Source: Lepidodermella squamata (Eukaryota > Animalia > Gastrotricha). From it: a stretch of 64,000 bases of DNA. Of the stretch, positions 1,887 to 51,954 are shown in pieces. Position 1 is the stretch's first letter; each line of letters opens with the position of its first letter. The notes beneath the pieces are model-generated. The model saw nothing but the letters and a program-made list of their open reading frames with translations. It made no database searches and was not told the DNA's origin. The DNA is taken from contig JBLDXI010000017.1 in NCBI GenBank assembly GCA_047495785.1, positions 1 to 64,000 on the forward strand, in the 5' to 3' direction. A program made the position numbers and the translations under genes.

Positions 1887-4250
1887 ATGGCCATAGACTT
1901 GTCACAAGCTATCGCTATCGCAAGGGTAAGATTTCCTTTCATCTTATAGGAGTAAGGTGGTTAATTTTTTGAATTGACCAGGTTATAATTTTTGTCCTAA
2001 GCTATTGTACTGCATATGGCTCAGCCAGCTGCGTGTTTCAAAAGCCTCGTTCTCCCTCTGCTCTCTATGAAAATAGTTATGCATTACTGAAAACCAAATG
2101 TAAGTTGCTAAATCGAGTCACGATATTTAATGTAAAAGGACTTCAATGTAATAATTTCTGAATTTGAGTGTCCCTGTAATATCGTGTGATAAACAAAATC
2201 GGAGTGACACCGGAACGATGGTCACCGGAAATTCGCCTAAATCGGGCGAAATTTTTCACAATTTTTTTATTTTGCTTCAGTGAGCGAATTTCTTATTCCA
2301 TTGTGAGAACTATTGACACAGTTTATTATAAATGCTATGCCTCCTTCTTACTTGAGGCCACCCTGGAAGTGATCGTTTCCGATGCTGCTCAAATGAGCAA
2401 GTCGCTGACGTTCTTTCTGATGCTTTTGAGTACAACGCCAAAATGTTCCCGCGTTCTCCTTCTTGCGTCGCCGCCCTCGATCAGGCAGTTTGTGAGATCA
2501 TCTGCTCTGGCAGCCAAAGCAAGTATATCGCTCGGGTGCTAATCCCCGGAACCAATAAAGTCAGATATCTGGTTTTCATGGACCCGAGCTACGCAAATGC
2601 CATCTACGATGCATGCAGCAAATCATATCAGCCGGTCTCGAATGTCTCCGTGGTGCGAACAATTTGCGTTAAAAGCAGAATAGAGGCAGAAGACACTAAA
2701 CTGGATTGTGACCTGAGACAATTTTTCGAGCAAACTCTCGGCAATCCCTTGGCAAATTACAGCCTTGTATTTTGCATTGCAAAGAATGGGCAGTACGTTA
2801 ATGAATGCCGCGTTGGAGGCAGTGCGGAAGTCCTACGAGCTCCGCCTTACAATAGGCCACAAACGTGCGATTCAAGTACAGCTCACTGCACAGATTGTTT
2901 ATCTGCTGAACGTTGCTCTGAGAGGATGAAAGAATGGAATGAAATCAATCCTTTAAGTGAATACGCTACGAGAGCCGCCGTGGTGTTGCCAACTTTCGTA
3001 GTTTCGGTTATTTTTTTGATGTGTGGTTGGATGATGTTTCCCAAGCATCAACAGAATCAGCAGAATGCCGAAGCTCTGCGTAATCAAGAAATATGGTTGT
3101 TGTACGTGAACTGGGTGTGTATCGTGTTCATGGAGTTCTCTTCATTTCTGGCGCCAGTAGCCTTATTATGGCTAAAACTGATTTCTGCAGCGACGCAATC
3201 AAAGCTATTGAGCAGTAAGTAAATACGTTTTCTGCATTGACTGCTATTACATTCGAATGTTCGTGTAGGAAATCGCCCATCTCGTTCAGCATTTTAATTG
3301 CTCGTGAAAAAGAGTCGACAACGTGCGCCTTTCTTGATGATGTAACTTGAATTCACCCTAATTAAAATTCCTAAATTGTTACATATTCTTAGCTCGATCG
3401 GTTGCTAAACAGTGATATGCGGCGTATAACAGCTAACCGCACTAAATTCGGGAAAATATGCGCAAGATCAAAAGCCACTGGTGTGTGCTTTGTGGAGAGT
3501 CCATTGAGTTACACGCAAAATAATCGAACCCTGCTCGACGATCTGTGTCGACCTGAGAACATAACCGCATTGATTCGCCATTTGCAAAGATGCGAACTGT
3601 AACCTTTCGATATTTCTCACGCTGTATCAACCATTTTTACCCTTCAATAGGTTGCCCGATCTAATCGAATGTCATTCAGAATTTCGGCACGTCGTTTTCT
3701 CCAATCAAATTTACTCAACATCAGGTTCTTATGCTTATGCAATGTTTCGACCTTTAAAATTTCTTCGAATTCGGCAATTAAAAAATTACGATATACACCC
3801 GCGATGAAGCGTTTGAATCACAACAGTTCTTTTTTTCTAGATGCAACAGCTCGAAGACTGCATACTGGTGACAAGCAAACCGTCAGAGCGACGATAAAAC
3901 TCGAGAAGCTACCCGGGACAAACGACTGGATAGAACAATTTCAACGACATCTTGACACTATGAAATACGCACATCTCAGGATTCTAGACTATGGCAGCGA
4001 CAAAGTATGACACAAATTAGTGTAGAATAACTGACTGCAGTTTCCCGTTCACAGCCGAAACAATTATCATCAACTGGGCTATCACGATTCACAGTAGCAC
4101 TTTTGATATGCAGAGGAATCCTTACGCTATCTGAAGGCATTGTCCTAGCTTGGTCATGGAAGAAAGCAAAATGTTCTAAACGGTCGTCCATTCAACAGCA
4201 TATTCTTTGGATTTTTTTCTCTGCATTCATCATAGTGTTTTTTGGCCAAA
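1887..4250 (+). CDS. Divergent NPC1-like gene 1, copy 1; multi-exon, truncated by the fold-back, 1-nt frameshift near 3133
   Basis: Inferred exons 1887-1925, 1982-2099, ~2357-3216, ~3393-3600, ~3842-4005, ~4054-4250. NPC1 N-terminal domain motifs CCSNEQ..RSPSCVAALDQAVCEIICSGSQSKY, SYANAIYDAC, HCTDC; two TM segments; middle-lumenal motif CFVESPLSYTQNNRTLLD. Confidence 0.7.
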
Positions 4251-6270
4251 CTTCTCGAGTTTTATCGTCGCTCTGACGGTTTGCTTGTCACCAGTATGCA
4301 GTCTTCGAGCTGTTGCATCTAGAAAAAAAGAACTGTTGTGATTCAAACGCTTCATCGCGGGTGTATATCGTAATTTTTTAATTGCCGAATTCGAAGAAAT
4401 TTTAAAGGTCGAAACATTGCATAAGCATAAGAACCTGATGTTGAGTAAATTTGATTGGAGAAAACGACGTGCCGAAATTCTGAATGACATTCGATTAGAT
4501 CGGGCAACCTATTGAAGGGTAAAAATGGTTGATACAGCGTGAGAAATATCGAAAGGTTACAGTTCGCATCTTTGCAAATGGCGAATCAATGCGGTTATGT
4601 TCTCAGGTCGACACAGATCGTCGAGCAGGGTTCGATTATTTTGCGTGTAACTCAATGGACTCTCCACAAAGCACACACCAGTGGCTTTTGATCTTGCGCA
4701 TATTTTCCCGAATTTAGTGCGGTTAGCTGTTATACGCCGCATATCACTGTTAGCAACCGATCGAGCTAAGAATATGTAACAATTTAGGAATTTTAATTAG
4801 GGTGAATTCAAGTTACATCATCAAGAAAGGCGCACGTTGTCGACTCTTTTTCACGAGCAATTAAAATGCTGAACGAGATGGGCGATTTCCTACACGAACA
4901 TTCGAATGTAATAGCAGTCAATGCAGAAAACGTATTTACTTACTGCTCAATAGCTTTGATTGCGTCGCTGCAGAAATCAGTTTTAGCCATAATAAGGCTA
5001 CTGGCGCCAGAAATGAAGAGAACTCCCATGAACACGATACACACCCAGTTCACGTACAACAACCATATTTCTTGATTACGCAGAGCTTCGGCATTCTGCT
5101 GATTCTGTTGATGCTTGGGAAACATCATCCAACCACACATCAAAAAAATAACCGAAACTACGAAAGTTGGCAACACCACGGCGGCTCTCGTAGCGTATTC
5201 ACTTAAAGGATTGATTTCATTCCATTCTTTCATCCTCTCAGAGCAACGTTCAGCAGATAAACAATCTGTGCAGTGAGCTGTACTTGAATCGCACGTTTGT
5301 GGCCTATTGTAAGGCGGAGCTCGTAGGACTTCCGCACTGCCTCCAACGCGGCATTCATTAACGTACTGCCCATTCTTTGCAATGCAAAATACAAGGCTGT
5401 AATTTGCCAAGGGATTGCCGAGAGTTTGCTCGAAAAATTGTCTCAGGTCACAATCCAGTTTAGTGTCTTCTGCCTCTATTCTGCTTTTAACGCAAATTGT
5501 TCGCACCACGGAGACATTCGAGACCGGCTGATATGATTTGCTGCATGCATCGTAGATGGCATTTGCGTAGCTCGGGTCCATGAAAACCAGATATCTGACT
5601 TTATTGGTTCCGGGGATTAGCACCCGAGCGATATACTTGCTTTGGCTGCCAGAGCAGATGATCTCACAAACTGCCTGATCGAGGGCGGCGACGCAAGAAG
5701 GAGAACGCGGGAACATTTTGGCGTTGTACTCAAAAGCATCAGAAAGAACGTCAGCGACTTGCTCATTTGAGCAGCATCGGAAACGATCACTTCCAGGGTG
5801 GCCTCAAGTAAGAAGGAGGCATAGCATTTATAATAAACTGTGTCAATAGTTCTCACAATGGAATAAGAAATTCGCTCACTGAAGCAAAATAAAAAAATTG
5901 TGAAAAATTTCGCCGATTTAGGCGAATTTCCGGTGACCATCGTTCCGTGTCACTCCGATTTTGTTTATCACACGATATTACAGGGACACTCAAATTCAGA
6001 AATTATTACATTGAAGTCCTTTTACATTAAATATCGTGACTCGATTTAGCAACTTACATTTGGTTTTCAGTAATGCATAACTATTTTCATAGAGAGCAGA
6101 GGGAGAACGAGGCTTTTGAAACACGCAGCTGGCCTGAGCCATATGCAGTACAATAGCTTAGGACAAAAATTATAACCTGGTCAATTCAAAAATTAACCAC
6201 CTTACTCCTATAAGATGAAAGGAAATCTTACCCTTGCGATAGCGATAGCTTGTGACAAGTCTATGGCCAT
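4251..6270 (-). CDS. NPC1-like gene 1, copy 2 (5' portion only)
   Basis: Reverse-complement copy of 1887-3908; includes ORF 4940..5716. Confidence 0.65.
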
Positions 6271-10047: not shown

Positions 10048-12069
10048 ATGGCCATAGACTTGTCACAAGCTATCGCTATCGCAAGGGTAAGATTTCCTTT
10101 CATCTTATAGGAGTAAGGTGGTTAATTTTTTGAATTGACCAGGTTATAATTTTTGTCCTAAGCTATTGTACTGCATATGGCTCAGCCAGCTGCGTGTTTC
10201 AAAAGCCTCGTTCTCCCTCTGCTCTCTATGAAAATAGTTATGCATTACTGAAAACCAAATGTAAGTGCTAAATCGAGTCACGATATTTAATGTAAAAGGA
10301 CTTCAATGTAATAATTTCTGAATTTGAGTGTCCCTGTAATATCGTGTGATAAACAAAATCGGAGTGACACCGGAACGATGGTCACCGGAAATTCGCCTAA
10401 ATCGGGCGAAATTTTTCACAATTTTTTTATTTTGCTTCAGTGAGCGAATTTCTTATTCCATTGTGAGAACTATTGACACAGTTTATTATAAATGCTATGC
10501 CTCCTTCTTACTTGAGGCCACCCTGGAAGTGATCGTTTCCGATGCTGCTCAAATGAGCAAGTCGCTGACGTTCTTTCTGATGCTTTTGAGTACAACGCCA
10601 AAATGTTCCCGCGTTCTCCTTCTTGCGTCGCCGCCCTCGATCAGGCAGTTTGTGAGATCATCTGCTCTGGCAGCCAAAGCAAGTATATCGCTCGGGTGCT
10701 AATCCCCGGAACCAATAAAGTCAGATATCTGGTTTTCATGGACCCGAGCTACGCAAATGCCATCTACGATGCATGCAGCAAATCATATCAGCCGGTCTCG
10801 AATGTCTCCGTGGTGCGAACAATTTGCGTTAAAAGCAGAATAGAGGCAGAAGACACTAAACTGGATTGTGACCTGAGACAATTTTTCGAGCAAACTCTCG
10901 GCAATCCCTTGGCAAATTACAGCCTTGTATTTTGCATTGCAAAGAATGGGCAGTACGTTAATGAATGCCGCGTTGGAGGCAGTGCGGAAGTCCTACGAGC
11001 TCCGCCTTACAATAGGCCACAAACGTGCGATTCAAGTACAGCTCACTGCACAGATTGTTTATCTGCTGAACGTTGCTCTGAGAGGATGAAAGAATGGAAT
11101 GAAATCAATCCTTTAAGTGAATACGCTACGAGAGCCGCCGTGGTGTTGCCAACTTTCGTAGTTTCGGTTATTTTTTTGATGTGTGGTTGGATGATGTTTC
11201 CCAAGCATCAACAGAATCAGCAGAATGCCGAAGCTCTGCGTAATCAAGAAATATGGTTGTTGTACGTGAACTGGGTGTGTATCGTGTTCATGGGAGTTCT
11301 CTTCATTTCTGGCGCCAGTAGCCTTATTATGGCTAAAACTGATTTCTGCAGCGACGCAATCAAAGCTATTGAGCAGTAAGTAAATACGTTTTCTGCATTG
11401 ACTGCTATTACATTCGAATGTTCGTGTAGGAAATCGCCCATCTCGTTCAGCATTTTAATTGCTCGTGAAAAAGAGTCGACAACGTGCGCCTTTCTTGATG
11501 ATGTAACTTGAATTCACCCTAATTAAAATTCCTAAATTGTTACATATTCTTAGCTCGATCGGTTGCTAAACAGTGATATGCGGCGTATAACAGCTAACCG
11601 CACTAAATTCGGGAAAATATGCGCAAGATCAAAAGCCACTGGTGTGTGCTTTGTGGAGAGTCCATTGAGTTACACGCAAAATAATCGAACCCTGCTCGAC
11701 GATCTGTGTCGACCTGAGAACATAACCGCATTGATTCGCCATTTGCAAAGATGCGAACTGTAACCTTTCGATATTTCTCACGCTGTATCAACCATTTTTA
11801 CCCTTCAATAGGTTGCCCGATCTAATCGAATGTCATTCAGAATTTCGGCACGTCGTTTTCTCCAATCAAATTTACTCAACATCAGGTTCTTATGCTTATG
11901 CAATGTTTCGACCTTTAAAATTTCTTCGAATTCGGCAATTAAAAAATTACGATATACACCCGCGATGAAGCGTTTGAATCACAACAGTTCTTTTTTTCTA
12001 GATGCAACAGCTCGAAGACTGCATACTGGTGACAAGCAAACCGTCAGAGCGACGATAAAACTCGAGAAG
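10048..12069 (+). CDS. NPC1-like gene 1, copy 3 (5' portion only)
   Basis: Copy of 1887-3908; includes ORF 10603..11379. Confidence 0.65.
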
Positions 12070-14435
12070 TTTGGCCAAAAAAACACTATGATGAATGCAG
12101 AGAAAAAAATCCAAAGAATATGCTGTTGAATGGACGACCGTTTAGAACATTTTGCTTTCTTCCATGACCAAGCTAGGACAATGCCTTCAGATAGCGTAAG
12201 GATTCCTCTGCATATCAAAAGTGCTACTGTGAATCGTGATAGCCCAGTTGATGATAATTGTTTCGGCTGTGAACGGGAAACTGCAGTCAGTTATTCTACA
12301 CTAATTTGTGTCATACTTTGTCGCTGCCATAGTCTAGAATCCTGAGATGTGCGTATTTCATAGTGTCAAGATGTCGTTGAAATTGTTCTATCCAGTCGTT
12401 TGTCCCGGGTAGCTTCTCGAGTTTTATCGTCGCTCTGACGGTTTGCTTGTCACCAGTATGCAGTCTTCGAGCTGTTGCATCTAGAAAAAAAGAACTGTTG
12501 TGATTCAAACGCTTCATCGCGGGTGTATATCGTAATTTTTTAATTGCCGAATTCGAAGAAATTTTAAAGGTCGAAACATTGCATAAGCATAAGAACCTGA
12601 TGTTGAGTAAATTTGATTGGAGAAAACGACGTGCCGAAATTCTGAATGACATTCGATTAGATCGGGCAACCTATTGAAGGGTAAAAATGGTTGATACAGC
12701 GTGAGAAATATCGAAAGGTTACAGTTCGCATCTTTGCAAATGGCGAATCAATGCGGTTATGTTCTCAGGTCGACACAGATCGTCGAGCAGGGTTCGATTA
12801 TTTTGCGTGTAACTCAATGGACTCTCCACAAAGCACACACCAGTGGCTTTTGATCTTGCGCATATTTTCCCGAATTTAGTGCGGTTAGCTGTTATACGCC
12901 GCATATCACTGTTTAGCAACCGATCGAGCTAAGAATATGTAACAATTTAGGAATTTTAATTAGGGTGAATTCAAGTTACATCATCAAGAAAGGCGCACGT
13001 TGTCGACTCTTTTTCACGAGCAATTAAAATGCTGAACGAGATGGGCGATTTCCTACACGAACATTCGAATGTAATAGCAGTCAATGCAGAAAACGTATTT
13101 ACTTACTGCTCAATAGCTTTGATCGCGTCGCTGCAGAAATCAGTTTTAGCCATAATAAGGCTACTGGCGCCAGAAATGAAGAGAACTCCCATGAACACGA
13201 TACACACCCAGTTCACGTACAACAACCATATTTCTTGATTACGCAGAGCTTCGGCATTCTGCTGATTCTGTTGATGCTTGGGAAACATCATCCAACCACA
13301 CATCAAAAAAATAACCGAAACTACGAAAGTTGGCAACACCACGGCGGCTCTCGTAGCGTATTCACTTAAAGGATTGATTTCATTCCATTCTTTCATCCTC
13401 TCAGAGCAACGTTCAGCAGATAAACAATCTGTGCAGTGAGCTGTACTTGAATCGCACGTTTGTGGCCTATTGTAAGGCGGAGCTCGTAGGACTTCCGCAC
13501 TGCCTCCAACGCGGCATTCATTAACGTACTGCCCATTCTTTGCAATGCAAAATACAAGGCTGTAATTTGCCAAGGGATTGCCGAGAGTTTGCTCGAAAAA
13601 TTGTCTCAGGTCACAATCCAGTTTAGTGTCTTCTGCCTCTATTCTGCTTTTAACGCAAATTGTTCGCACCACGGAGACATTCGAGACCGGCTGATATGAT
13701 TTGCTGCATGCATCGTAGATGGCATTTGCGTAGCTCGGGTCCATGAAAACCAGATATCTGACTTTATTGGTTCCGGGGATTAGCACCCGAGCGATATACT
13801 TGCTTTGGCTGCCAGAGCAGATGATCTCACAAACTGCCTGATCGAGGGCGGCGACGCAAGAAGGAGAACGCGGGAACATTTTGGCGTTGTACTCAAAAGC
13901 ATCAGAAAGAACGTCAGCGACTTGCTCATTTGAGCAGCATTGGAAACGATCACTTCCAGGGTGGCCTCAAGTAAGAAGAAGGCATAGCATTTATAATAAA
14001 CTGTGTCAATAGTTCTCACAATGGAATAAGAAATTCGCTCACTGAAGCAAAATAAAAAAATTGTGAAAAATTTCGCCCGATTTAGGCGAATTTCCGGTGA
14101 CCATCGTTCCGGTGTCACTCCGATTTTGTTTATCACACGATATTACAGGGACACTCAAATTCAGAAATTATTACATTGAAGTCCTTTTACATTAAATATC
14201 GTGACTCGATTTAGCAACTTACATTTGGTTTTCAGTAATGCATAACTATTTTCATAGAGAGCAGAGGGAGAACGAGGCTTTTGAAACACGCAGCTGGCTG
14301 AGCCATATGCAGTACAATAGCTTAGGACAAAAATTATAACCTGGTCAATTCAAAAAATTAACCACCTTACTCCTATAAGATGAAAGGAAATCTTACCCTT
14401 GCGATAGCGATAGCTTGTGACAAGTCTGTGGCCAT
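12070..14435 (-). CDS. NPC1-like gene 1, copy 4 (probably the native locus), truncated mid-exon at 12070
   Basis: Contiguous with single-copy DNA to the right. The reading frame runs into the spacer (RATIKLEKLPGTNDWIEQFQRHL; KCSKRSSIQQHILWIFF), matching paralogue segments RLTIKLANKQESHAQEWL and DCKKRSRWQKSIL. Confidence 0.7.
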
Positions 14436-23616: not shown

Positions 23617-26600
23617 TCAGAGCTTCTTGAACATTTCGTCATAAGTGGTTCTCAGATTTCTGTAAAAGCAAACTTTGAAATTGAATAAAACTAAACCTGA
23701 CATATTGACATACTCAGCTATTGCCCCTTTGCCTTTGGCTTCCAAAGCATGTAGAAAAATCAGGAAGTTAGCATGGGACTTGCCGACATGATTTGTCAGT
23801 AGGTGACTAGTTCGACGATCGTCTGGCAACTGGGATCAGAAAAGTTATATAAAATGAACACGAGAACACCAAAAGCTCACTCACATCATCTAAAACTTTC
23901 AGCTCGTTTATGCTTAGAATTCCGGAATTCGTGAGGTCATCGTGTAAAATATCGTGTACCCGTAACACTATCAGTGAACTCATGGCAGCTCCGATAGTTT
24001 GATCGACTGCTTTCTTTACCTTTGCTTGCAATGCTAGCGATTGGAGACCAGTCACTGTAGGCTCTTCGTTCAGCATTCTGTCTGCCTCCACATTATAGGG
24101 TTGATCAGTCGCGACAGCAGTTTCAGCAGCCAGTTGATAGGCATTTTGATTTGCGGCTGCTATATTTCTACTATTCACTCCCAATGGATCAGGTAAAATG
24201 TTATTAGAGCTATCTGGTTCGTCTCCCGATTGTAGTGTCAATAAGTTATTTCCAGCGCCGGGTGCCATCGCAGAGTCATTTTGTGGCCCGAGGAAAGCCA
24301 TCGCTTCAGGCATAGGAAGATATTTTCTCGAAAATGTATTGCCGTTGATCCGTCTGATTGAAAAATTGAAGACGAAGCATATTGTTACGAACATGTACAT
24401 AACTGCCGTAGATATAAACCGTTGATCCAGAGGTCTGCTCAGCACGCCCCAATATAAACCAGCAAAATATTCAAATGCCAAGCCGATAGCTGCAGATTGA
24501 GAAGTGGACACAATCAACCATTGATCCCAACTGCTAGCATCTGGTTAGAGAAGTAATTAATTATATTCGATGTGTGAAAATTGGAAAATTGCGAACCGAT
24601 AATGCTTAACAATATGAAGACCGACACGTAAAACGGCCAAAGAATCAGGCCCCACGACTCAGCACTCCATGTTGTGATGTCGCAGTAATCGACGAAATCG
24701 TCACAAATAACTGTCCTGAAGTAATTTAGGTGTTGAGCCTTGAAAAACTCAAGCTCTTCGCGATCTCTCCGGAGCCGCTGATACAGCTCATGATTCGTTA
24801 TCCGTTTATGTTGCACCGTTATTACCAAAGCTATCAAATGATGAATCATTGGATATGGAAGCTTTTTAATCACATAGAATTGAATTTACCTTTAGATCCT
24901 TTCCACCACAATAAATCATGCTGAAAGTTGTATAGATATCTGAAATTGGTCAAATTTCAAATCATATTTCTTTTTTCAGAGAGCGTGGAAGGATTTCTAC
25001 AGGTTAATGGGAGCCTTACCCAGATTGATGATACTCGCATACTTCGTCATGGGACCAGAAATGATGAAAGGCTTCATCCGCAGGAAACGAGATATCAGAA
25101 TAATTACAGGCTCTGCATTCTGTAAGAAAATTTATATGCTGGATAAATTGAAGAAAAGTGAGAAAATAACCGGGAGGATCTGTGATGGTGCACTCCTCAA
25201 TTTTCCCACTGTTTATAGTACAGCAAGATGAGTCGACCCATGAGCGTACCGTGTTGAAGCCACTGTATGAAACACGTGATGAAGTAACGCTGCCATTTCG
25301 ATAAGCTTGCGATTGAAGAATGTCCAGCAGCGAATTCTGCGCACAGCCTGGCAGATTGCAAATTCTATCGATTACTGCCCGTGAATCGACCCCAGTTTGT
25401 GGAAAGATGAAAATACGGCGGAATTGACCCAAACCGGGGAAGTATTTGTCCAACGTGCTATCGTACTTGCTCAATTCCTAAATGAAGTGAGTATGTAACA
25501 AGAAAAGTCATGCCTGCCAGAACAAACATTTCCGAAGTATGACAATTGATCACCGTGTATATCGCGTTTCATAATTGGCAGAAGAACGACGATAGGAAGG
25601 GCGAGTAGTAAAAACAAAACCAGTATAACGCCCGCTGGTATTCTTGGCTTTCTCGTGCCCTGGCTGGCCCCAGATCGAGCATAGTATGACAGTTTTATAA
25701 AAGGTAGAGAAAAATCATGGTGCTTCGCGGCCTTGAGCACAAAAATGAATAGAATTTGGCGTAGCATCAACACAGGTAGATCAATCAATAGCTCTACATC
25801 TTTGATCACATCCAGAATTCGGCCTACCTCCACCATGAATGAGAATTATTTTAGAAATGTATGAAAAATAGACTCACAAATCAAAGCCATTGAAGTAACA
25901 ATAGTGAGACTTCGACATGGCGCCGTAACGTGACGACTCGCAAGATACTGCCATATGTCCCAATCAGCTGGGCAAATTAATGCAGCTTCCCGCTTATCGC
26001 ATGGATTCTTCGACTTGAACATCAGTTCAATTATCACATAAAACGTGAAGCCGGCCATGACAATTAAAGAAATGATTGTTCCAGTATGGATATTTTGTTG
26101 GTTGCCCCTCAAAAGTCCATTCATCTTGGGTATAAGTTGAATTATGTCCAGAACAAATACGAAGGTCACCGCCATTGCCAAGATACTTTTTTGCCACCGA
26201 GAGCGCTTCTTGCAGTCATGTCGAATTAACCAAATAACAAACCACAGTAAAATAATTAGCCCAACAGATATCAACACAATTGCCGCTATCAAAACAGCTC
26301 GTAAGGATGCTTCCAGAGAAGTATCAGCTTCTTTTGGCTGTCACAACTACAAGTCATAATGCCATAAAAGAAGGTTGAATAGTAACATGCCTCACTCCCG
26401 TGAGTGCGGATATCGAAAGTTTTGAACTTCCAAACATCCAGTTGACTCCGAAGCACATTGAGCCACTCCTGTGCGTGCGATTCCTGTTTGTTCGCTAGTT
26501 TTATGGTCAATCGCATCATTTTCGCATTAATTGGAGAATAAATCTGCTCAGGGAACACCACATGTGGGAAGTCAGACAAGCATTCCGGTGAATTTGCGAA

Positions 26601-28151
26601 TCTATAAATCACGTCGAAAGGATAGTCGAGGTAAAAGGCGGGACTCACAGTTTGCGGCAATTTTGAATGTATCGCCTCAAGTCCGATGATGAACAGATTT
26701 CTTCGAGTTTTGTTTGATTATTTTGAAAATAACTCATCGGGCCCTCGAAAAAGCATTTGTTTCTTGCTTTCGATTGGAGGCATAATGACTGCAATGTCAC
26801 ATAGCTTCCGCCCGGATTAAACGTAACCTCCGAGATCTTCGCTGACTGAAGTTCGTGAAGCTGTAAGTTAATTCATAGAGTTCGAGTTTTGGCAGAGCAA
26901 TTATAATTTGTACCTCTTTGAACAAGTCGCAATCCTTCGCGTCAGGTTTAGCCTCTAGTATGATGCTATAAGAAATTGGAGCAGTCCTAAGCAAGGAAAA
27001 ACGTCATCTAGGGTTTAAAGGCTGTGCCGGTAACTTGCTTATCTATCGTCTCCATCACATCGCGGCAAAAGCCCGGAGCCGAAAGTAAATTAGTATTGCC
27101 AACAAAATAAATGGTTATCATTGCAAGTATGCAGAAGCTGTTCAATTTGGCAATCGCACGTTGTTGTTTGGTCAAGGTTTTTTCTTTACCATCGGGCCTA
27201 AAAGCTGGCCTTCGAGCAGATTTTCGCCTATTAACGTAAATTATCCATGCAAATATAGATCTGAGGGCCGGTAGAATGGGTGGAACCATAGCCACTACAA
27301 TAGTCCATCGTTCGTCGGAAGACCCCGTCTCAGCCCACTTCAAACTGCGTTCGACACACTCGGATCTATTGCGACAGTCAGTGCATAGCGCTGTTGAAGA
27401 ATCGCATTTTTCCGGCGGGTTGTGCTGTGGCTCTCTCAATAATTCAACAGGATCGCTGACCATGCATTCAGCTGAGAGGTTAGAAGAGGGTCCAACGATG
27501 CAAAATTTGAAGTCCTTGTAGGTTATCCAAGTGCTGACGATGTTTAAAAGACATTGCGCATCGCACGATGATTTCTCAACCGAGCCGTTCCGCTCATTGC
27601 CGCTCATTGCCTTCAAGGTGTCAATGACAAGAGAATTAGATATCGGATCGTACCCATCTTCACAGGAAACTTTGATTGCCGCTGCATACTCTTCGGCGAT
27701 GACGACCGAATAGCTGTTAGACGTCCTCTTAATGAATAGCGCTTGATCGGCAGAGCAATGTATCTCGCACATCAACTGATTGAGAGCGTTAACGCACGAC
27801 GGTGAACGTTGAAATGTTGCTTCGATTCTTTCAAAAACAACTGGTAAGTTGTCTGCGATATCTTTGTTCGAACAGCAAGGGAAACCATCTTTTCCAGCTC
27901 GACCTAATTGCATGAAGAAATTGAAGTGATATCTGCTGAAATCTCTGCGAGCTTACATTTCCTATCGCGAAGATACTCAAGGCTTTCTTCATAGATCGAT
28001 TCTCGCGAGTTGAAATAGCAGCTTTGAGTGAAAGAGTAACAAATTTGCAGAAGCAAAATCTATTACATCAAAATGAATGTAATGGCAATTGTGTTTGTTA
28101 CAATTGATATACCATAGTAACTGCAGTTATCCATTTCGGCTTGTCATCCAT
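23617..28151 (-). CDS. Divergent NPC1-like polytopic membrane protein with C-terminal CARD-like domain (multi-exon)
   Basis: NTD motif CCSNKD..RSPSCVNALNQLMCEIHCSADQ, ALCTDC; hydrophobic SSD-region segments (25471-26292); C-terminal lumenal motifs ICNLPGCAQNSLLDIL and SWVDSSCC (cf. NPC1 VCGGMGCNNDSLVQQI, QSSCC). Intron 24541-24596 joins the last TM exons in frame to the linker and CARD exons (ending 23885, 23829-23714, 23659-23617). The 13-codon first exon matches paralogue 1. Confidence 0.75.
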
Positions 28152-28641
28152 GTGAAAAGCAAAGTGATCAACGAAATCAAACGTGGCGATAGATCAACTC
28201 AGTGTATACATCAAATGAATGCACTTATCGTCAATAATTTATATTCTACTTTTTAGCATTGTGAAAAACCTCGAAAAAACAAAAGAAAATTGGGCATCCG
28301 ATGCCTGATGATATTTCAGCTTAACTATGGTACCCACTTATATGGTTCGCAAGTCTTAACGGTTCCATTCGCTTCGGATGTGAATGAAGTATTTCTGGCA
28401 CCGGTATGACTTTCGCCCATATATAAAGGAATACGCGTACAAACAGCTGGCTACAGTGTATTCATATTAAATATGATGATTTATTATCTTCAACAATGAC
28501 TACCACGCAGCTTTGCCGGAGATAATGTCCAGTGTAGCAAAGATAGGGCTCGCCTTATCTTTCCTACTGGGTCCTCGTCATGTTTGCTTTGGCGATTTCG
28601 GTGAATCATTATTAATTATTAACACCTTACAAATTCATAAT

Positions 28642-30420
28642 TTATTTCGATTTATAACATAAGTATTGCTTTGTGTTAAGTCCGTAATTCTCACTCTTCG
28701 CAGCAGTGCCAACTTGTCCCACGAATAGCCGAGTGTATCCCGACCTGCAATCCGGGCTGTTTGAGGCAAATGGATTATTAACCGTAAATTCCAGATCGGC
28801 CGTGTTGGAACAGCTACCGTCTATACATTGAAAGCCGCCGTCAATTAGTTTATTGGCCTTGTTGAGGCAGATAACAAACTCCCAAGCTATGTACTTTCCG
28901 AAGACGTAGGGCTCGGTATCTCCTAAGCAAATTTGATTTCCAGTGTACGGATTGGCGCTATCTACCTGCATGTATCCTCCAAAGTAGCCTTCCATGCAAG
29001 ATTTCAAGTCCGACCCCTCACAGCCGCGAGCCTTTATGAAATCCTGCCCTAAAGCACTATTATAGCGAACAAAAGCACCTCCTGTTACATCCTTGTCATG
29101 TAGCGTGATAGGCATGCAAATTTGATTGCTTACAAAACACGTATCAGACGAATCAGGGAATATCCATCGACTTGAAGCAAATTGTGCTGCTTTGAACTTA
29201 TCCGGACAACTGAATCGATTTCGACTGAGAGAAAGCTTATTCATAACATTGGGGTATCTGGACTCGCACATCGACTTTTGGAACATCCCCCCGAAAATTG
29301 CCGTTACATTCACGGGGTTGCAGTCTTCAGCACGATCCTCGGATATCAAACAACCATTCTTAAGAACACGTTCAAAAACATGTTTCTTGGCTTCAATGTC
29401 CTGAATATTAGGAAATAGGCGCTTGCTCAGGAGAGTACTGATAGGTAAGACCTTTTTGATGACTGGAAAAGGGTCCTTAACCGTTTCAGAGTACCAGGAT
29501 TCAGCATTCAACAAGCATACATCCAAATTATCCGCAACTCCCTCTGATCGAAAATCAATGGCATTTGTTCCCGTGCATTCACATTTGTTCCTATTAAGCC
29601 GATCGGCCAGCTTGAAGGCTGGAGATCCTAACTCAATAGCTTCTAGCCATTGTTGCTCGTTATATGAACACTTGACGCCAAATACACTCCCGAGAACGAG
29701 GCCTGTGACGACATGAAAGCCGTAATCTTCTCTGAATTTTCGGTAAGCAGCCTTTTCGTCTTTCTTGTCTAATTTTGTTGGGAGGTTTGTAACTCTGTCC
29801 ATGAATTGCCGATTTAATCTGACGCTAGAAAGTAGATCCAAATCTGCACAATAGGTCTGGCAAATAGAGTAGGCGATTAGCTCGTGGCCTCGAAATAGCT
29901 CGTATTCCTTTGGTATTCCAAATTTGAATGTGGTCAAAGGTTCCGGGTAGGTTGGGTCGATCATTTCAATAAATTTAGCCGCAAAATTAAAGTAACTAGT
30001 TTCATTCTTTATAAGAGCTGGGCGAAATCGTTTGTCACAAAGTTTGCAGTCGTGGATCGACACGCCTTCGTATGCGTTTTGTAGATTCGCAGAACTCCTT
30101 AGTTTGATTTCAACGACCCTTAGGCGCCGGAAGCCTCCGTCTATGCTGGAGCCGCGGAGAAATGTGTCTGCTGATGCGACGTGGTAGCCAGTTCCCAATG
30201 CTTCAGCCATGCGTTTGAGTCTCCTCTCCACCTCAATTGGGCCAATTGTGGTCGTACTCGTAACCGGCCGAGCGGTTGAAGTGCTGCTAGCTTTCAGTCC
30301 ATCTAGCAGTCTCGCATACTCCTGTGCTCTACGATTGCTCTCATTTCTTTCTTCAGATCCGACGATTGAGGGTAAGCTTACTAGCAGAGTAATGGCTGCA
30401 AATGTAAAAAGCATGTTCAT
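28642..30420 (-). CDS. MPEG1/perforin-2-like secreted MACPF protein, 592 aa, no C-terminal TM
   Basis: Signal peptide; LGTGYH..IDGGFRR and FREDYGFHVVTGLVLG MACPF motifs; P2-domain-like repeats FGGMFQ..C, YFGGY..NPYTGNQIC, NNPF..CRSGY. Confidence 0.8.
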   Translation of the reverse strand: MNMLFTFAAITLLVSLPSIVGSEERNESNRRAQEYARLLDGLKASSTSTARPVTSTTTIGPIEVERRLKRMAEALGTGYHVASADTFLRGSSIDGGFRRLRVVEIKLRSSANLQNAYEGVSIHDCKLCDKRFRPALIKNETSYFNFAAKFIEMIDPTYPEPLTTFKFGIPKEYELFRGHELIAYSICQTYCADLDLLSSVRLNRQFMDRVTNLPTKLDKKDEKAAYRKFREDYGFHVVTGLVLGSVFGVKCSYNEQQWLEAIELGSPAFKLADRLNRNKCECTGTNAIDFRSEGVADNLDVCLLNAESWYSETVKDPFPVIKKVLPISTLLSKRLFPNIQDIEAKKHVFERVLKNGCLISEDRAEDCNPVNVTAIFGGMFQKSMCESRYPNVMNKLSLSRNRFSCPDKFKAAQFASSRWIFPDSSDTCFVSNQICMPITLHDKDVTGGAFVRYNSALGQDFIKARGCEGSDLKSCMEGYFGGYMQVDSANPYTGNQICLGDTEPYVFGKYIAWEFVICLNKANKLIDGGFQCIDGSCSNTADLEFTVNNPFASNSPDCRSGYTRLFVGQVGTAAKSENYGLNTKQYLCYKSK

Positions 30421-43331: not shown

Positions 43332-45458
43332 TCAATAGTAGAAGCGCTTTTTGCGCGGCAGTGGTTTTGGTTCCGCTTCATTGGCTTTGTCGAGCGGAAT
43401 GGCCGTTGACGGTGTTTCGTATCCTGGCGGTTGTGGGGCGGTTGGGACTTGAAGTGTCGGCATTATTGTCTGGATTTGGAGCGGATTTGAAGGGCGATTT
43501 CTATTGCAGATGAGGTAGATGATTGCGACGGTGTTCAGTGTCAGTATGAGAGAATTCGCTCCGGTTGGGAGAATCGATAGCAGCGCTGAGTGGGTGTCGT
43601 TGGAGGAGCCGATTTGTCCAACGTAGATACTCATCAGCTGCGTGAAGAGACCTAATTGGGCCGAGCTGGCGCTGATATTTTCGACGAGCCGCAGTGTTGT
43701 AGCATCATTCCGGTTGAACTCGTCACGCATGGTTGAATCCTTAAGGCTGGCGACGATTTTATCGATATTTTTGCTGTGTTGGGTCGGGTAGTCGCTGGTA
43801 TTGGGGTCAAGTAGCTTTAATCGACCCGACTCGGTGACCGTTAGTATCTCTTGGCGCAGATCCTCGTCGCATTCAAAGGCCGATGGGTGTAATTCGAGGT
43901 CGCCAATTTTAATGATGTGGTTGCAAGAGAGGTGGAAAATGTGGCCACTTTGCGAATATTTTCGGCTAAAAATTTGTTTTCTGGCGGTGCCATTAACGCG
44001 CCAGAGTGAGACAGTCGCCGGTTTTTGAAGGAGGAACGAGCTGTGGTTGAGTCGCACAACATCGCTGGCTTGTTCGCACCAGTTGAACTCGGCTTTCGAG
44101 CTGATAACGGGGTCGAGAGCTAAGGCGTGCTCGGAATCAGCGACGAGGCCGGTCTGTTGTAGCCAGTCTGGTGTCGTGGAAATATCGCAGAATTCAAGTG
44201 GGCAGACGATTTTGTGGGGTGAAATTGTGGTACAGGCGTCGAGACAGCTGGTAGGAAATAAGCGGACGGGCTGGTCTGAGCATTGGATGGCGGACATGCC
44301 GATGTAGACAGATCGCGGGGCCGTTAAACAGCTGCGGTTGCCCAGCAAGCTGATCGGGGACAAGGCGATGATGTTGCAGACCGAGTTTCTTATTATCGGA
44401 AGTTTCGCTCGAATTGTAACGTCGATGACATCGGGTTGATCGGCGCCGGTGATGGACATCCAGGCCGAGACAAACAATGGGACACCCTGGGTTAGTAATT
44501 TGACCGTTTCGTTGTGCCTGGGTGAGATTTGTAGCTGGCGGATGATTTTAGTCGCCATGGCCTCGGTCATTTCATAGGTACCGAACGAGCCATCGTTTAT
44601 GCCTACTCGGATGCGTTCGACATGCGCGAACTGGTCACGCATCGCTGCCTGCTTTGTGAAGTGAAAAGCAGTCAGTTTATTGAAGTTGTGCCACTTCTGC
44701 CGATCGCTGGTGTATTCGCTGGTCAAATTTATGAGCACATCTTCCACGGCTTGCAGACGTTGTCCTAGCCGGTGGGTTTGTTTCGCTAGCAGCATTGTGG
44801 CGTTGCCAATTTTTCTGATTTGAGTCTCATCCTCTTTTAAAGCAGCCGTCGCTGCGTAGAGGGCTTTCTTCGTATTTTCGTCAGTGGTCGAGCAACCGTT
44901 GTGTGAGAATAGTTCGTTGATGCCACGTAGAACTATCGAGGAGCAGATCCAGTCTAAGTCACGCCTGGCGCGGTATCGTTTCCCAGTCACTGTCGACGAG
45001 GCGGTCAGCTTCGCGGTCGACGGCTGGCACTGAGTGGCCCACTGCGACAAACAGTCGAACTCTGAGAATCCGAACGGCGGTATCGGCGTACACCATTTTC
45101 CGAGATAGGCGGCACATGATTTCAACTTGTCCCAAGGCGACGGAGCGAGCGATGTCCCAGTTTCCTCCCAAAAATCGAGTACGTGATGAACTTCCTCCGG
45201 ATAAAATTGGCGAATAAATTTCGGCTTTTGAAACTCAACTTGCATATTCAAGGCGGTTAAAATAACGTCGTCGAACATGTAGACCAGCTGTTTCTTAGTG
45301 CCTTTGAGCAATGCTTGCGGGAAAATTACGTGGTCAGAAGTGAAAGCGTCCGTGTTAAGTTCGATTTGCCGTTTTGAACGAGTAGAGGTGGCTGAAGAAA
45401 TTAGCGAAGCGGCGAGTGAGGCTACGGCAAGCCACAGGCGAAGGCCAGTAAGCGACAT
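43332..45458 (-). CDS. env: Envelope glycoprotein (class I fusogen-like), 708 aa
   Basis: Third ORF before the 3' LTR; signal peptide, furin-type sites RSKR and RYRARR, heptad-like helix, Cys-rich region, N-glycan sequons, C-terminal hydrophobic anchor and short tail. Confidence 0.85.
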   Translation of the reverse strand: MSLTGLRLWLAVASLAASLISSATSTRSKRQIELNTDAFTSDHVIFPQALLKGTKKQLVYMFDDVILTALNMQVEFQKPKFIRQFYPEEVHHVLDFWEETGTSLAPSPWDKLKSCAAYLGKWCTPIPPFGFSEFDCLSQWATQCQPSTAKLTASSTVTGKRYRARRDLDWICSSIVLRGINELFSHNGCSTTDENTKKALYAATAALKEDETQIRKIGNATMLLAKQTHRLGQRLQAVEDVLINLTSEYTSDRQKWHNFNKLTAFHFTKQAAMRDQFAHVERIRVGINDGSFGTYEMTEAMATKIIRQLQISPRHNETVKLLTQGVPLFVSAWMSITGADQPDVIDVTIRAKLPIIRNSVCNIIALSPISLLGNRSCLTAPRSVYIGMSAIQCSDQPVRLFPTSCLDACTTISPHKIVCPLEFCDISTTPDWLQQTGLVADSEHALALDPVISSKAEFNWCEQASDVVRLNHSSFLLQKPATVSLWRVNGTARKQIFSRKYSQSGHIFHLSCNHIIKIGDLELHPSAFECDEDLRQEILTVTESGRLKLLDPNTSDYPTQHSKNIDKIVASLKDSTMRDEFNRNDATTLRLVENISASSAQLGLFTQLMSIYVGQIGSSNDTHSALLSILPTGANSLILTLNTVAIIYLICNRNRPSNPLQIQTIMPTLQVPTAPQPPGYETPSTAIPLDKANEAEPKPLPRKKRFYY

Positions 45459-45539
45459 CGAAATTCGTTAATGAGTAAATATCAAGAAATATTTACAGTT
45501 CGGATAAATGGTTGGTTAAATTTTTCGCTCAAATAAAAT

Positions 45540-48500
45540 CTATACAGTAGGAGAAGAATCTGTATTGTTTGAAGATTGTTTCTTTCTCGACGTTCTGGTG
45601 ATTTGTGTTGTTCGAGTGTGTGCCTTGCCGGATTTCGGCGATGTTTGAACAACGGGGTTGGCGAAAGTTACACGCGTGCGAAGGTTATACGGCTGATGGA
45701 CGACCGTAGCGTCAAGATCTGACTTATTGAGCGAGTAGTTTCTGTCGGAGGTGACGCTAGTTGAGGACTTTTCAGGCGTCGTCACGCTTGATTGATTTTT
45801 CTCGGGTGACGAGGCTGGACGGTGTTGCGGGGCCACCGATTGCGGTTGGACAGGTGGTACAAGGCTAACCAAGTCCATGTCGAACTGGAATGGTGTTGGT
45901 CGTCGGTGGAATCCTGGCGATGCTGTCAAATGGCCAGTGTTTTGCATTCGAAATTTGTGGGCTGGTGTTGACGTTATTATTGGACTGAAATGGTCGATGT
46001 TTGACGGTGCTGACATGGAGGAATGGCGATTATCTTCGTGTGAGGTAGACGGTGCTGGCCCAGTTATTATTGGCGGTGAAGGCATTCTGGGCGGTGTTTC
46101 AGGCAATTCTGACGTGCTTGGGGTACGTCGTCGCGGTACCGGTGGCGTTGTTGGCGTCGTAGTCGCCGGCGTCGCGGTTGACGGCGTTGTACTTGCGGTC
46201 GTTGTAGTCGGTGTTGTACTTGTAGAAGTCGCCGTTGTAGTACCCGAACTGGCCGAGGTCGGCCTTTTCGAACTACGGAGTATGTACCCACCCGACGTGA
46301 AATTGTTGTCACGGGTTGGCTCATGAACAATCTGGCGGCTAAGCGTCTGGCGAAGATCAGGTAACGGCGACGCTGCGGCGGCGGGCGGTCGCGGCGCAGT
46401 CGACGCAGGTGTCGATGCGGCCGCAGCGCCGGGCGGCGCAGTCAACTTTGTAGCGCTCTTTGCCGACGAACGGGCCGACTGCTGCGCTTGCGAATATCGA
46501 TCAGCCGTGGGGAAATCGCGCAACCAGGCCAACTTGAGGCGGTTGCGATGGGCAAGGATATCACGACCGGACAGGTCAAAGAAGCGAATAGCGTAAGTAA
46601 CAGGCGAAACTCGAGCCACGACGGAATACGGGCCCTTGTAGCGAGATGCGAATTTCGGTATCACATCGGGCCGGTTACTGGGCACGTGGAGGTAGACAAG
46701 ATCGCCGATATCGAACGGCTCGCAATTCCCTGAACTGTGATCATAGCGCTCTTTCTCACGAGCACGCGCGAGTTGGAAACGAGCTCGAACGTCGTCGAAA
46801 GCGCGACGGAGTTTGTCATACAAGCCGTAGGCATGATTCTCACGCAACTCGTTCTGGGTCTTGGGCTGGGACGCAGGCTCCTCGGCGGAGCACTGCCAGT
46901 CCATAGCCAACTTGGGCATATGACCCAGCATAAGATACGCTGGTGGGTGGCGATGAGTCGAATGGTGAGACGAGTTGTAGCCGGAGCAGCAGGCCTTGAC
47001 GAAGCGGCACCAGTCGAGGTGCTGGCCGGGCACGACGTATTTCGCGATGCAGTTATTCATGACTAAATTCAAGTGTTCGCAATGGCCGTTAGTCTGCTGG
47101 TGATAGGCGGAGCTTTTAATACGACGAATCGCAAACGCATCAGTCACGTCCTCGATGAGCTTGGAGATGAAGTAGCGGGCGTTGTCATTGAGCAAAGCAC
47201 GCGGGCTACCGAAAATGTAGATCCAGTCGAGCAATTTCTCAATCACGGTTTCGGACTTAATATCCGGAATGGGCTCCCACAGCGTGAAGCCACTGAAATG
47301 ATCAGAAATGATGAGAATATAGCGCATTCCACGACGAGACGTAGGGTATGGACCGGCTACGTCCCAGGTGAGAAGCTCATTCACGTCATGCGAAAAGATG
47401 GGCTCCATCGGAGCACGCGGGTGTTTCACAGGGTGATCACGAATTTGGCACACCGCACATGATTTGACGTATTCAGCAGTAATTTCCTCGTAATTGCGGA
47501 AATAGAATCGATCTTTTAAGGTGGATAGGGTGCGTTCAACGCCGAAATGACATTTCTCGTCATGCATAGCGTGAAGCACGGTGACGATGAGATTCTCAGG
47601 TACGACGATCTGGTAACCCGATTCAGAGGCAGGGTAGTAGCGACACAACAAGCCATCAGGCGCTATGAAATACTTGCTACGCTGCTTTTGATTGTGACGA
47701 AGGCGGCGTTTCTTGGAGCGACAACGACGATCGGCGGCTTGCGCCGAAATCAAAACATCGCGAGTCAAGTTAACGCCACACGGCGTCAGGGAGCGGAACG
47801 GGTCGCCCTCGTGGTACGCGTTCTCGTCGACAACAACGTCGTCATCGAAAGTAAGATCGGACGTCATAGCGTTGATGCTGGCCGGGAGTGGCGTAGCTCG
47901 ATCAGGCATACGCGACATCGCATCGGCATTCGCATGAGTCGAACCTCGGCGCGTTATGATATTCAGCGGATATTGTTGTAGGATCATCAGGTAGTTGGAC
48001 AACCGACCACCGGTGTCCTTCCAGGTGTTCAAAGTACGAAGAGCAGCGGCGTCAGTAATGACGTCGGTGGTAATCGAATTCAAACCCGGCGAGATGTAAG
48101 GCTTAATCTGCTTTAGCCCGTACAGAACGGCAAGAACCTCTCGTTCACAACTAGAATAATTGCGCTCGGCCTTAGTCAGATTTCGAGAACCGAAAGCGAC
48201 TGGGCGCCGGGTACCGTCGTCCTGGTCTTGTTCGAGAACGTAGCCGAGACCGGACCCCGACGCATCAGTCGATAAAATAAATTTCTTGTCAAACTGAGGA
48301 AAGGCCAAACAAGGTGGCGAGATCAACGCCTTTTTAAGCTCATTAAAAGCGTTCTCGGCATCCTTATTCCAGTGAAAGTTGTTCTTACGCTGTAGCTCGT
48401 ATAACGGAGCTGCGATCATTGCAAAATTCTTGATAAATCGCCGATAATATCCGGCTAACGAGGTAAAAGCTCGAAGTTCGCTAACCGTCGTAGGGACGGG

Positions 48501-50231: not shown

Positions 50232-51682
50232 TGATCGCCACGCTGTTCACGCGCGTCATAAGACAAACGCGGCTGATAATCACGATCGCGCGACGGAGTA
50301 CGGCGCATGCCGCGCTGATGATAGGGCGAGTGACCAGAACGGTAGTCATCGCGAGAACGACACTGATCGGCATGATGACCAGGGCGGTGGCATTTATCGC
50401 AAACAGGGGTGCGAGGACGGCGATCGTCCCGCTGTTGTAGCAAATCGCGCATCTTGGAACGGCACTCGGCCTCGACATGGCCGGGCTTCGAGCAATAATA
50501 GCAGGACGGGCGCGAACCACCACGCCGATTATCATTATTAGAAGTGTTGTTATTATTATTACCGTTATCGCGGCTGCGGTAGGCGGGCCGGTTGTTGTAA
50601 TTACCACGGCCCTTGTCGTTGTAGCTCGGCTTGTTGCGACCAAGCTCCTGAACCTGCGCGGTCAGCGCGTTGACAGCTTGAATCAGCGCCGTTTCGGACG
50701 GCTCAGCCTTAACGACGGCGGCAGCAGCAGGCGGCGCCGCAGCGACGGGCGCAGGCGCAGGCGGTGCCAACGAGGCGGCCGCGCCAGGCGCGTAGTGCGG
50801 GGCGAGCGCGACCGGGGCCGGCGGCACATATAGAGGCGTACCTAACGAAGTCGCCGTCACGTGGGTGACCGGCGGCGGCGCGGCGCCAGGCAGGCCAATG
50901 GGAAAACCGGCATGGTTAAGGCCGAATGACGGCTGTGCATAGGGCTGTGGATACGAGGGAGTGTAAGAGACATGGCCGAATCCGGCCGGAAGCAGGGCCT
51001 GGGCGCCGGCAGGGCCGACGCGGATCGAGGTATCCGCGACCTCGGCGAGGCGCAATAACTCCTCGCACGTTTGAGGTACGCCAAGCATAGCCATACGCTC
51101 ACGAATAGCAGGCAAAATGCCGAAATAGACCCGATTAACGAGGTCCTTGCTAGTGTTTTCGGGTTCGCCACGCCCGGAATCAATCCACAAACGGCGAATA
51201 ACGTCATAATACTGGCGAACGGTCTCGCCAGGGTATTGAGGGCGAGAATAAAACTGCATCGAGGCTAACACGGTGTCCGGCGCAAGGCCGGACGCGGCGA
51301 GAAGCGCCTTCCGCGCCTCATCAAAAGTAGTAAATGCAGAATAGTCAATAGTCGCCCACACCCGCTCAAGTTTGTTCGACAGAAACAAGGGCAGCATGTG
51401 GAGGACATGTTGTAACGGGTGTAAGTGATTATCAGTGTCGCAAATGTAAGGCGCGACCTTAGCAAAACGACCCCAGGACGAAACGAACTCGTCGTAGGAA
51501 TCGCCAGAAATCTGGCCGACACGCACGAGCGCCAGCTCGATAGGCATGGCGAAGGCGGCGGCCGCAGTAGTAGGCGCCGGCGGCGCGGGACGGCCAGGCG
51601 TAGCGCCCGTGGCGGCCACGCCAAAACCGGGTACACCACCAGACAGAGCAGACCCAGCAGGGCCGGAGGAGCCGGATGCCAT
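50219..51682 (-). CDS. gag: Gag with two CCHC knuckles
   Basis: CYYCSKPGHVEAEC and CDKCHRPGHHADQC; QYPGETVRQY capsid motif; first ATG after the PBS at 51682. Confidence 0.92.
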   Translation of the reverse strand: MASGSSGPAGSALSGGVPGFGVAATGATPGRPAPPAPTTAAAAFAMPIELALVRVGQISGDSYDEFVSSWGRFAKVAPYICDTDNHLHPLQHVLHMLPLFLSNKLERVWATIDYSAFTTFDEARKALLAASGLAPDTVLASMQFYSRPQYPGETVRQYYDVIRRLWIDSGRGEPENTSKDLVNRVYFGILPAIRERMAMLGVPQTCEELLRLAEVADTSIRVGPAGAQALLPAGFGHVSYTPSYPQPYAQPSFGLNHAGFPIGLPGAAPPPVTHVTATSLGTPLYVPPAPVALAPHYAPGAAASLAPPAPAPVAAAPPAAAAVVKAEPSETALIQAVNALTAQVQELGRNKPSYNDKGRGNYNNRPAYRSRDNGNNNNNTSNNDNRRGGSRPSCYYCSKPGHVEAECRSKMRDLLQQRDDRRPRTPVCDKCHRPGHHADQCRSRDDYRSGHSPYHQRGMRRTPSRDRDYQPRLSYDAREQRGDHLNY

Positions 51683-51738
51683 GAGACCGTAAAAACGAGG
51701 AAATGAGTGTGATGTGGCGGTAAAAGCAACGAAAAAAA

Positions 51739-51753
51739 CCACTTCTGACACCA
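51739..51753 (-). promoter_or_regulatory. Primer-binding site TGGTGTCAGAAGTGG (tRNA-Leu type)
   Basis: 6 nt inside the 5' LTR; resembles the complement of the tRNA-Leu 3' end. Confidence 0.75.
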
Positions 51754-51759
51754 AAATAG

Positions 51760-51954
51760 TGTAATATCCGGCACGGTACGGATACCACACGGGTTCGATA
51801 TAAAGAGTAAATAACAGTCAGGCAGAAATGATCCAAAACTCCTCATTTTATTGTTATTGTGTTTCAGTATTTATACTGCGGCACGCAGGCCGCTTATTGG
51901 TTGGTATGCGGACCAATCGCGCTCGACTTGCGTGTCGCGCGTCCGCATAGCACA
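51760..51954 (-). repeat. 5' LTR
   Basis: Direct repeat of 42985-43179. Confidence 0.97.

Follow-up and report, generated by a model that had tools for sequence, protein, structure and literature searches.

A minus-strand gene of NPC1 descent carrying a divergent CARD-type tail in the gastrotrich Lepidodermella squamata suggests a membrane receptor wired to CARD signalling

The 64,000-nucleotide stretch analysed here (the window) is the start of contig JBLDXI010000017.1 (contig C17) in the Lepidodermella squamata assembly GCA_047495785.1, and it contains gene A, one minus-strand gene running from 28151 to 23639, to which our final exon-chain model assigns 14 exons and 1259 codons. Positions are those of the window, and genome-wide scans covered the 121-Mb assembly of 151 contigs. 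The reading frame opens with an ATG at 28151 and continues without an internal stop across GT-AG introns of 41-82 nt, in agreement with an earlier sequence-only reading that had proposed a multi-exon gene filling 28151-23617 on this strand. Three upstream junctions (27034/26953, 26913/26861 and 26350/26310) have weak splice sites and were joined by frame alone. Two sequencing runs were compared with the model: X1, which behaves as RNA and in which joints labelled 'opposite strands' were read as concatenated read pairs and not used, and X2, a DNA run. Mismatch-free X1 contigs specific to gene A cover the 5′ untranslated region and start, exons 3, 6 and 9, and the linker that precedes the C-terminal domain, and gene A is a real, expressed gene. 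X2 shows 13 differences from the window, all of them within 26971-28270, and the 3′ 3 kb (region 23971-27034) are identical; eight of the differences are exonic, six of which change an amino acid, in the signal peptide, the N-terminal domain and the loop after the first transmembrane (TM) helix.

The predicted protein begins with a signal-peptide-like segment, which starts at the ATG of exon 1 (28113-28151, abutted by a mismatch-free RNA contig at 28151-28219) and is completed in exon 2 (27957-28059, flanked by the GT..AG introns 28112-28060 and 27956-27904, 53 nt each), and continues into three lumenal domains that follow the NPC1 order of N-terminal, middle and C-terminal. The N-terminal domain (amino acids 48-250) is encoded by exon 3 (27035-27903) together with two helices found by hydropathy, TM1 (27295-27233) and TM2 (27157-27083). 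Searched as a single exon, it matches Pfam NPC1_N (PF16414) at 27.4 bits against a cut-off of 27, and it carries a CC...SC...C...C..Q motif whose six invariant Cys/Gln columns recur in NPC1 genes of this genome. For a Foldseek search the exon of this domain was modelled with AlphaFold2 (predicted local distance difference test score, pLDDT, 66), and 12 of the 12 best PDB matches were NPC1L1, NPC1 or NCR1 (E 2e-5). Exon 4 (26914-26952), with 13 codons, weak splice sites on both sides and no RNA over it, is uncertain and represents the sole frame-keeping path found. The core of the middle lumenal domain lies in exon 5 (26649-26860), where Pfam NPC1_MLD (PF22314) scores 26.2 bits on the single exon, under the cut-off of 27, and where hhalign places it at a position collinear with its NPC1 counterpart (E 5e-4); the remainder is in exon 6 (26351-26601, with a mismatch-free RNA contig at 26408-26470), whose 3′ boundary is uncertain at the weak donor 26350.

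The third domain, the Cys-rich C-terminal lumenal domain, follows TM8 and occupies exon 9 (25020-25477, with an RNA contig at 25034-25120), ending in exon 11 (24597-24830) beyond the small exon 10 (24890-24939). An X1 contig that ends at 25020 carries an 8-nt loose end identical to the start of exon 10, which backs one spliced junction, across intron 25019-24940. The domain was matched by tblastn, by phmmer against NPC1 genes of the same genome (E 7e-6 to 2e-5) and by hhalign over 184 columns collinear with NPC1 (E 1.2e-3), in an alignment that joins TM8 and the domain to NPC1 882-1070. These results uphold the N- and C-terminal NPC1-type domains recognised by the sequence-only reading, and all three lumenal domains, the middle one with a sub-threshold Pfam score, together with the TM layout support an NPC1-like scaffold.

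NPC1 has 13 TM helices (1 + 6 + 6), with five terminal helices. Hydropathy indicates about 11 in gene A: a pair precedes the middle domain, about five form a block, and TM8 is followed by three terminal helices, two fewer than in NPC1. The block comprises TM3, TM4 and TM5 in exon 7 (25878-26309) and TM6-7 in exon 8 (25528-25823), which also encodes a cytosolic loop and TM8; the terminal segments, at residues 976-994 (TM9, 24654-24598 in exon 11), 1003-1030 (TM10, 24517-24434, weakly hydrophobic) and 1036-1054 (TM11, 24418-24362), match the count of about three given before. Pfam detected no match to the sterol-sensing domain (SSD, PF12349) or Patched (PF02460) in gene A at E up to 1, and a genome-wide scan with the Patched profile found 34 other strongly matching exons, none of them in gene A. 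Local alignment to the NPC1 TM regions, including that of exon 7 to the sterol-sensing region, was at the level of chance (z -0.8 to 0.4 versus shuffles). Profile comparison, proposed as a check on the earlier reading, divides: NPC1_N matches, and SSD and Patched do not, and the TM core is not recognisably that of NPC1.

Because it lacks detectable SSD or Patched likeness and two terminal helices are gone, we class gene A, on its predicted protein, as NPC1-derived rather than as a canonical family member or transporter. Since its membrane core is no longer recognisable and stops at three terminal helices where NPC1 has five, it is probably no longer an RND-type sterol pump. We also considered that gene A might still be an NPC1-type lipid or sterol transporter, with the CARD tail described below serving just to regulate turnover or localisation; the protein keeps the TM order, an acidic residue in TM4, the fold and Cys pattern of the N-terminal domain, and the other two lumenal domains. 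However, 34 Patched-type exons elsewhere in the genome are readily detected by a profile that misses gene A, its TM similarity to NPC1 is at chance, and the two-fold RND core is disrupted by the absence of two terminal helices out of five, so that continued transport is quite unlikely. An Arg/Lys-rich stretch follows TM11 and, combined with the NPC1 topology and the odd number of terminal helices, places the tail of the protein in the cytosol by inference.

Exon 12 (23885-24540) encodes TM10, TM11, a linker (24361-24050) and the first three helices of the C-terminal domain (24049-23885) as a single open exon with no stop between them, and exon 13 (23710-23829) encodes helices 4-6. The linker is 104 residues long and contains 13% Ala, 12% Asn and 9% Pro, as expected from the Asn/Ala/Pro-rich segment described earlier, and gene-specific RNA contigs lie at 24247-24313 and 24127-24192. 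The in-frame fusion claimed by the sequence-only reading is therefore borne out by this shared exon, and also by an NPC1-like gene on contig C3 that holds the same fusion in one open reading frame (ORF).

The junctions on either side of exon 12 (24596/24541 and 23885/23829), which had been singled out for confirmation by RNA, did not receive it, since X1 offers no support for gene A at 24596/24541 or 23884/23830. The X1 contig in which 23830-23885 is skipped agrees in its bases with a CARD-only paralogue at 17.7-18.2 kb and not with gene A, so this type of junction is demonstrated for the CARD-only gene instead. Most X1 depth over the shared CARD exons likewise belongs to the paralogue (about 97-135 of 104-142 at diagnostic sites), which appears to be much more highly transcribed than gene A. 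X1 depth is 9-20 over 23983-24465 versus 0-3.6 upstream, a profile that fits either 3′ bias or an internal start, and no X1 contig covers 24466-24948, exon 11 included. These RNA data count against a continuous gene A transcript and would suit a locus with two products, in which the NPC1-like part has no working tail and a start inside exon 12 gives rise to most expression of the CARD exons, as a CARD-only protein; the linker has in-frame Met codons, and a CARD-only gene of the same origin does exist. However, within exon 12 no stop divides TM11 from the CARD, RNA contigs reach the TM-proximal part of the exon (24305-24465 bin), sparse RNA data often show 3′ bias, and the C3 paralogue keeps the fusion in one ORF. 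On balance we find separate products very unlikely and retain a single fused protein.

The tail that follows the linker is a helical domain of about 100 amino acids, and single-exon and alignment searches recovered nine copies of its family in the genome. These comprise gene A and its CARD-only paralogue on C17, a pair on contig C3 (one CARD-only gene and one NPC1-like tail), two CARD-only genes and an ankyrin-CARD-CARD gene on contig C48, and a contiguous copy, with no intron split, directly 5′ of an NB-ARC ORF on contig C10. A profile built from six other copies, excluding gene A and its paralogue, scored the gene A tail at 30.8 bits and the paralogue at 31.8 bits; none of 5000 shuffled sequences reached the gene A score (maximum 15.6 bits), and the six profile members scored 31-68 bits when left out in turn. 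The intron after helix 3 (23884-23830 in gene A) is in phase 0 and occupies an identical alignment column across the spliced CARD copies aligned, gene A included, and a second intron, inside helix 6, occupies the same or an adjacent position among CARD copies.

Assignment of this family to the CARD fold draws on its members. The exon for helices 4-6 of the C3 CARD-only gene matches Pfam CARD at 18.6 bits (E 0.0019) over half the domain (profile positions 42-83), the better of its two sub-threshold Pfam matches, and in the C10 member CARD is the sole Pfam match (14 bits, profile positions 25-83). The clusters nearest to the C10 member in the Atlas, a protein-language-model resource, are CARD (score 0.92, with 190-197 of 256 features in common and 66 of the top 100). 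Together with the family profile and the position before NB-ARC, these matches make a divergent CARD-type domain the best reading of the gene A tail.

Several results weigh against that reading. Every Pfam CARD score in the family is under the 23.9-bit cut-off. Pfam CARD (PF00619) found no match on the gene A exon halves at E up to 10, and whole-genome scans with PF00619 and PF00531 gave none on gene A. PDB sequence searches returned nothing relevant, whether queried with the tail halves, profiles or the C10 ORF, and Atlas features on the two tail halves were uninformative (scores 0.77-0.80). AlphaFold2 modelled helices 1-3 alone as one long helix of 54 residues, and no caspase locus with a family CARD was found within the 1.5 kb flanks examined. 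The CARD-like tail of the sequence-only reading thus stands as a helical domain of about 100 residues that is identified as CARD through its in-genome relatives, and not through any Pfam match on the gene A exon halves themselves.

The tail and its eight relatives might alternatively form a lineage-specific helical domain other than a death fold, serving for example in oligomerisation or trafficking, with the CARD signals reflecting convergent composition. The sub-threshold Pfam scores, the empty PDB sequence searches and the single 54-residue helix modelled for the first half of the domain would all be expected of such a domain, as would its apparent isolation: an exon 12 HMMER search of 1.84 billion representative proteins returned just one marginal low-complexity match and no homologue, and a word search of 5.8 billion proteins with the linker and half-CARD gave no match. 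An ESMFold2 two-chain fold of the exon-encoded tail halves scored 0.00 and is no evidence either way. However, CARD is the best or only Pfam match in two independent members, the Atlas neighbours of the contiguous C10 copy are overwhelmingly CARD, and one member holds the position that CARD has in Apaf-1, before NB-ARC. We therefore consider a fold other than CARD unlikely.

With the tail read as a divergent CARD, its family intron positions bear on the end of gene A. Because the intron inside helix 6 is common to related CARD genes, on C3 and C48, we take the last 50 nt before the earlier-read stop (23709-23660) as most likely an intron, which is followed by a probable exon 14 (23639-23659) of six codons and a stop, so that the coding sequence would end at 23639 and not at 23617. 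Retention of this intron would extend the frame to the stop at 23617, and X1 supports neither form. Over the matching region the CARD-only paralogue has an 8-nt difference and would meet a stop if read through. The splices from about 25020 to the stop, reported before as keeping frame, do keep it, and it is their final segment and terminus that we revise.

The CARD-only paralogue lies downstream of gene A on the same strand (17706-18214), with exons 18214-17948 and 17892-17773, probably a third at 17714-17706, and spliced mRNA in X1. Its protein is 73-95% identical to the gene A tail, with a dN/dS of 0.31, a sign of constraint, and the intron of the pair has diverged more than the exons. The two genes, 6 kb apart, are the only two copies of their subtype in the genome. 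Between them, a 328-amino-acid ORF on the plus strand (19064-20047) has a weak zinc-knuckle (gag-like) match. The C3 NPC1-like gene is the closest NPC1-like paralogue of gene A; both the N-terminal and the C-terminal lumenal domains are present in it, as are about five terminal TMs. One of its ORFs, of 326 amino acids, encodes TMs, a linker, weak ankyrin repeats and CARD helices 1-3, and the next exon encodes helices 4-6; both halves of this tail match the neighbouring CARD-only gene on C3 (BLASTP E 5e-8 and 2e-7). An NPC1-like-CARD gene beside a CARD-only copy of its own tail is therefore seen twice, at the C3 locus and at the gene A locus, and the latter clearly exemplifies how the 3′ part of a gene can turn into an independent adaptor or decoy gene.

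Elsewhere in the genome, the C48 ankyrin-CARD-CARD gene (C48:669673-671695) encodes about 360 amino acids of ankyrin repeats and then two tandem CARD copies, and the two small tandem CARD-only genes (C48:689360-690166) lie twenty kb from it; no NPC1-like exon was found within 10 kb of these genes (670-690 kb examined). Genome-wide there were only about three caspase loci and eight Death-domain matches, against 47 NB-ARC places, the last mostly single ORFs of 900-1000 amino acids, and two of six NB-ARC loci inspected (L045 and L050) showed TIR-like motifs N-terminal of the P-loop, as judged by eye. No similarity to the gene A tail was found at the Death-domain loci, the caspase loci or the six NB-ARC loci examined. 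The best genome-wide PF00619 match, at C24:2664080-2664202, falls inside a dynein heavy chain (AAA_9, 204 bits) and was rejected as a false positive.

Within the window, four further NPC1-like fragments at 2365-5794 and 10525-13957 match amino acids 51-443 of gene A and form two inverted pairs meeting head-on. Each covers the N-terminal domain (NPC1_N, 45 bits) with two TMs and a portion of the middle domain, interrupted by internal stops or introns; gene truncation or a palindromic duplication may account for them. ORFs matching MACPF at 28645-30420 (37 bits) and 15156-16451 (19 bits), both on the minus strand, lie directly upstream, on the same strand, of gene A and of one NPC1-like fragment, respectively, and this placement of both ORFs means that the pairing of MACPF with an NPC1-like sequence is repeated. 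The region 44000-52000 stands out by its GC content (50-57%, versus about 42% elsewhere) and a strong GC skew.

Among known proteins, gene A resembles NPC1, NPC1L1 and NCR1 in its signal peptide, the Cys motif and fold of the N-terminal domain, the two TMs before the middle domain, the five-TM block, TM8, the Cys-rich C-terminal lumenal domain and the predicted cytosolic C-terminus. It differs from them in a shorter middle domain, in TM sequence that is not recognisably sterol-sensing or Patched, in having three terminal helices, and in a cytosolic tail of about 200 amino acids with a CARD. Identity to the best named NPC1 relatives was no more than 34-36%. Patched-1 is a multi-pass membrane receptor related to NPC1. 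The cytosolic C-terminal tail of PTCH1 assembles DRAL/FHL2, CARD8/TUCAN and caspase-9 into a CARD-containing, caspase-activating complex (PMC5864239). Gene A would share with it the plan of an NPC1-related multi-pass receptor whose cytosolic C-terminal tail engages CARD signalling. However, PTCH1 itself lacks a CARD and brings one in by way of an adaptor, whereas the CARD of gene A is within the receptor chain, and caspase-9 is part of the PTCH1 complex, whereas no caspase with a matching CARD was found for gene A at the loci examined.

A second parallel is with Apaf-1/CED-4 scaffolds and their CARD-only regulators, as the gene A tail is homologous to the N-terminal domain of the C10 CARD-NB-ARC gene and to small CARD-only genes; unlike those scaffolds, gene A lacks a nucleotide-binding module, and its CARD is C-terminal and would be membrane-tethered. 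In amphioxus, sea urchin and cnidarians, shuffling of death-fold domains to unusual partners rewires immune and apoptosis networks (PMC2575513). Gene A is similar in that a death-fold domain is joined to an unusual partner, but the words 'Patched', 'NPC1' and 'sterol' do not occur in the text of that study. The sequence-only reading had known of no NPC1-CARD architecture, and our full-text literature searches found none.

Taking these data together, the observation behind the sequence-only reading is confirmed and its interpretation as an NPC1-like scaffold fused to a CARD is largely supported, a sensor that would signal through CARD being what we infer. The best explanation of the whole, which we hold to be probable, is that gene A encodes an NPC1-derived membrane protein with a disordered cytosolic linker and a divergent CARD, acting as a CARD-signalling receptor. 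Its product would be a 1259-amino-acid, glycoprotein-like membrane protein of NPC1 descent that serves as a receptor or scaffold and not as a pump. The lumenal or extracellular NPC1-type domains would bind a lipid, sterol or protein ligand, and ligand-dependent clustering would gather the tails. The tails could then seed CARD-CARD assemblies that take in the CARD-NB-ARC scaffold and the CARD-only protein, the latter as an adaptor or a decoy. The CARD family supplies potential homotypic partners for such assemblies in its two NPC1-like tails and its CARD-only, ankyrin-CARD-CARD and CARD-NB-ARC genes. The output would be a death or immune signal, which would make gene A a hard-wired analogue of Patched-1 recruiting CARD8/TUCAN and caspase-9.

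More tentatively, gene A and its C3 relative may belong to a small family of NPC1-derived receptors that have lost transport and become membrane sensors, nucleating CARD assemblies that connect through CARD-only adaptors to an Apaf-1-like CARD-NB-ARC-ankyrin scaffold. Candidate triggers for such sensors include lipid, sterol, membrane damage and the neighbouring MACPF pore-former. If true, this family would represent the first death-fold pathway to start at a transporter-type membrane protein. Death-fold domains are connectors of apoptosis and innate-immune pathways, and their partners show what a lineage monitors. To our knowledge, mammals connect lipids to CARD only indirectly, by way of Patched and CARD8 on the one hand and of cholesterol trafficking and the inflammasome on the other; with a CARD attached to an NPC1-type protein, CARD signalling would be tied directly to the handling of lipids in endolysosomes or at the plasma membrane. 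One CARD-NB-ARC scaffold and two receptor genes, together with the CARD-only copies of the latter, form a compact and testable set of parts, and the architecture of gene A points to a membrane receptor that would feed straight into cell-death or immune pathways.

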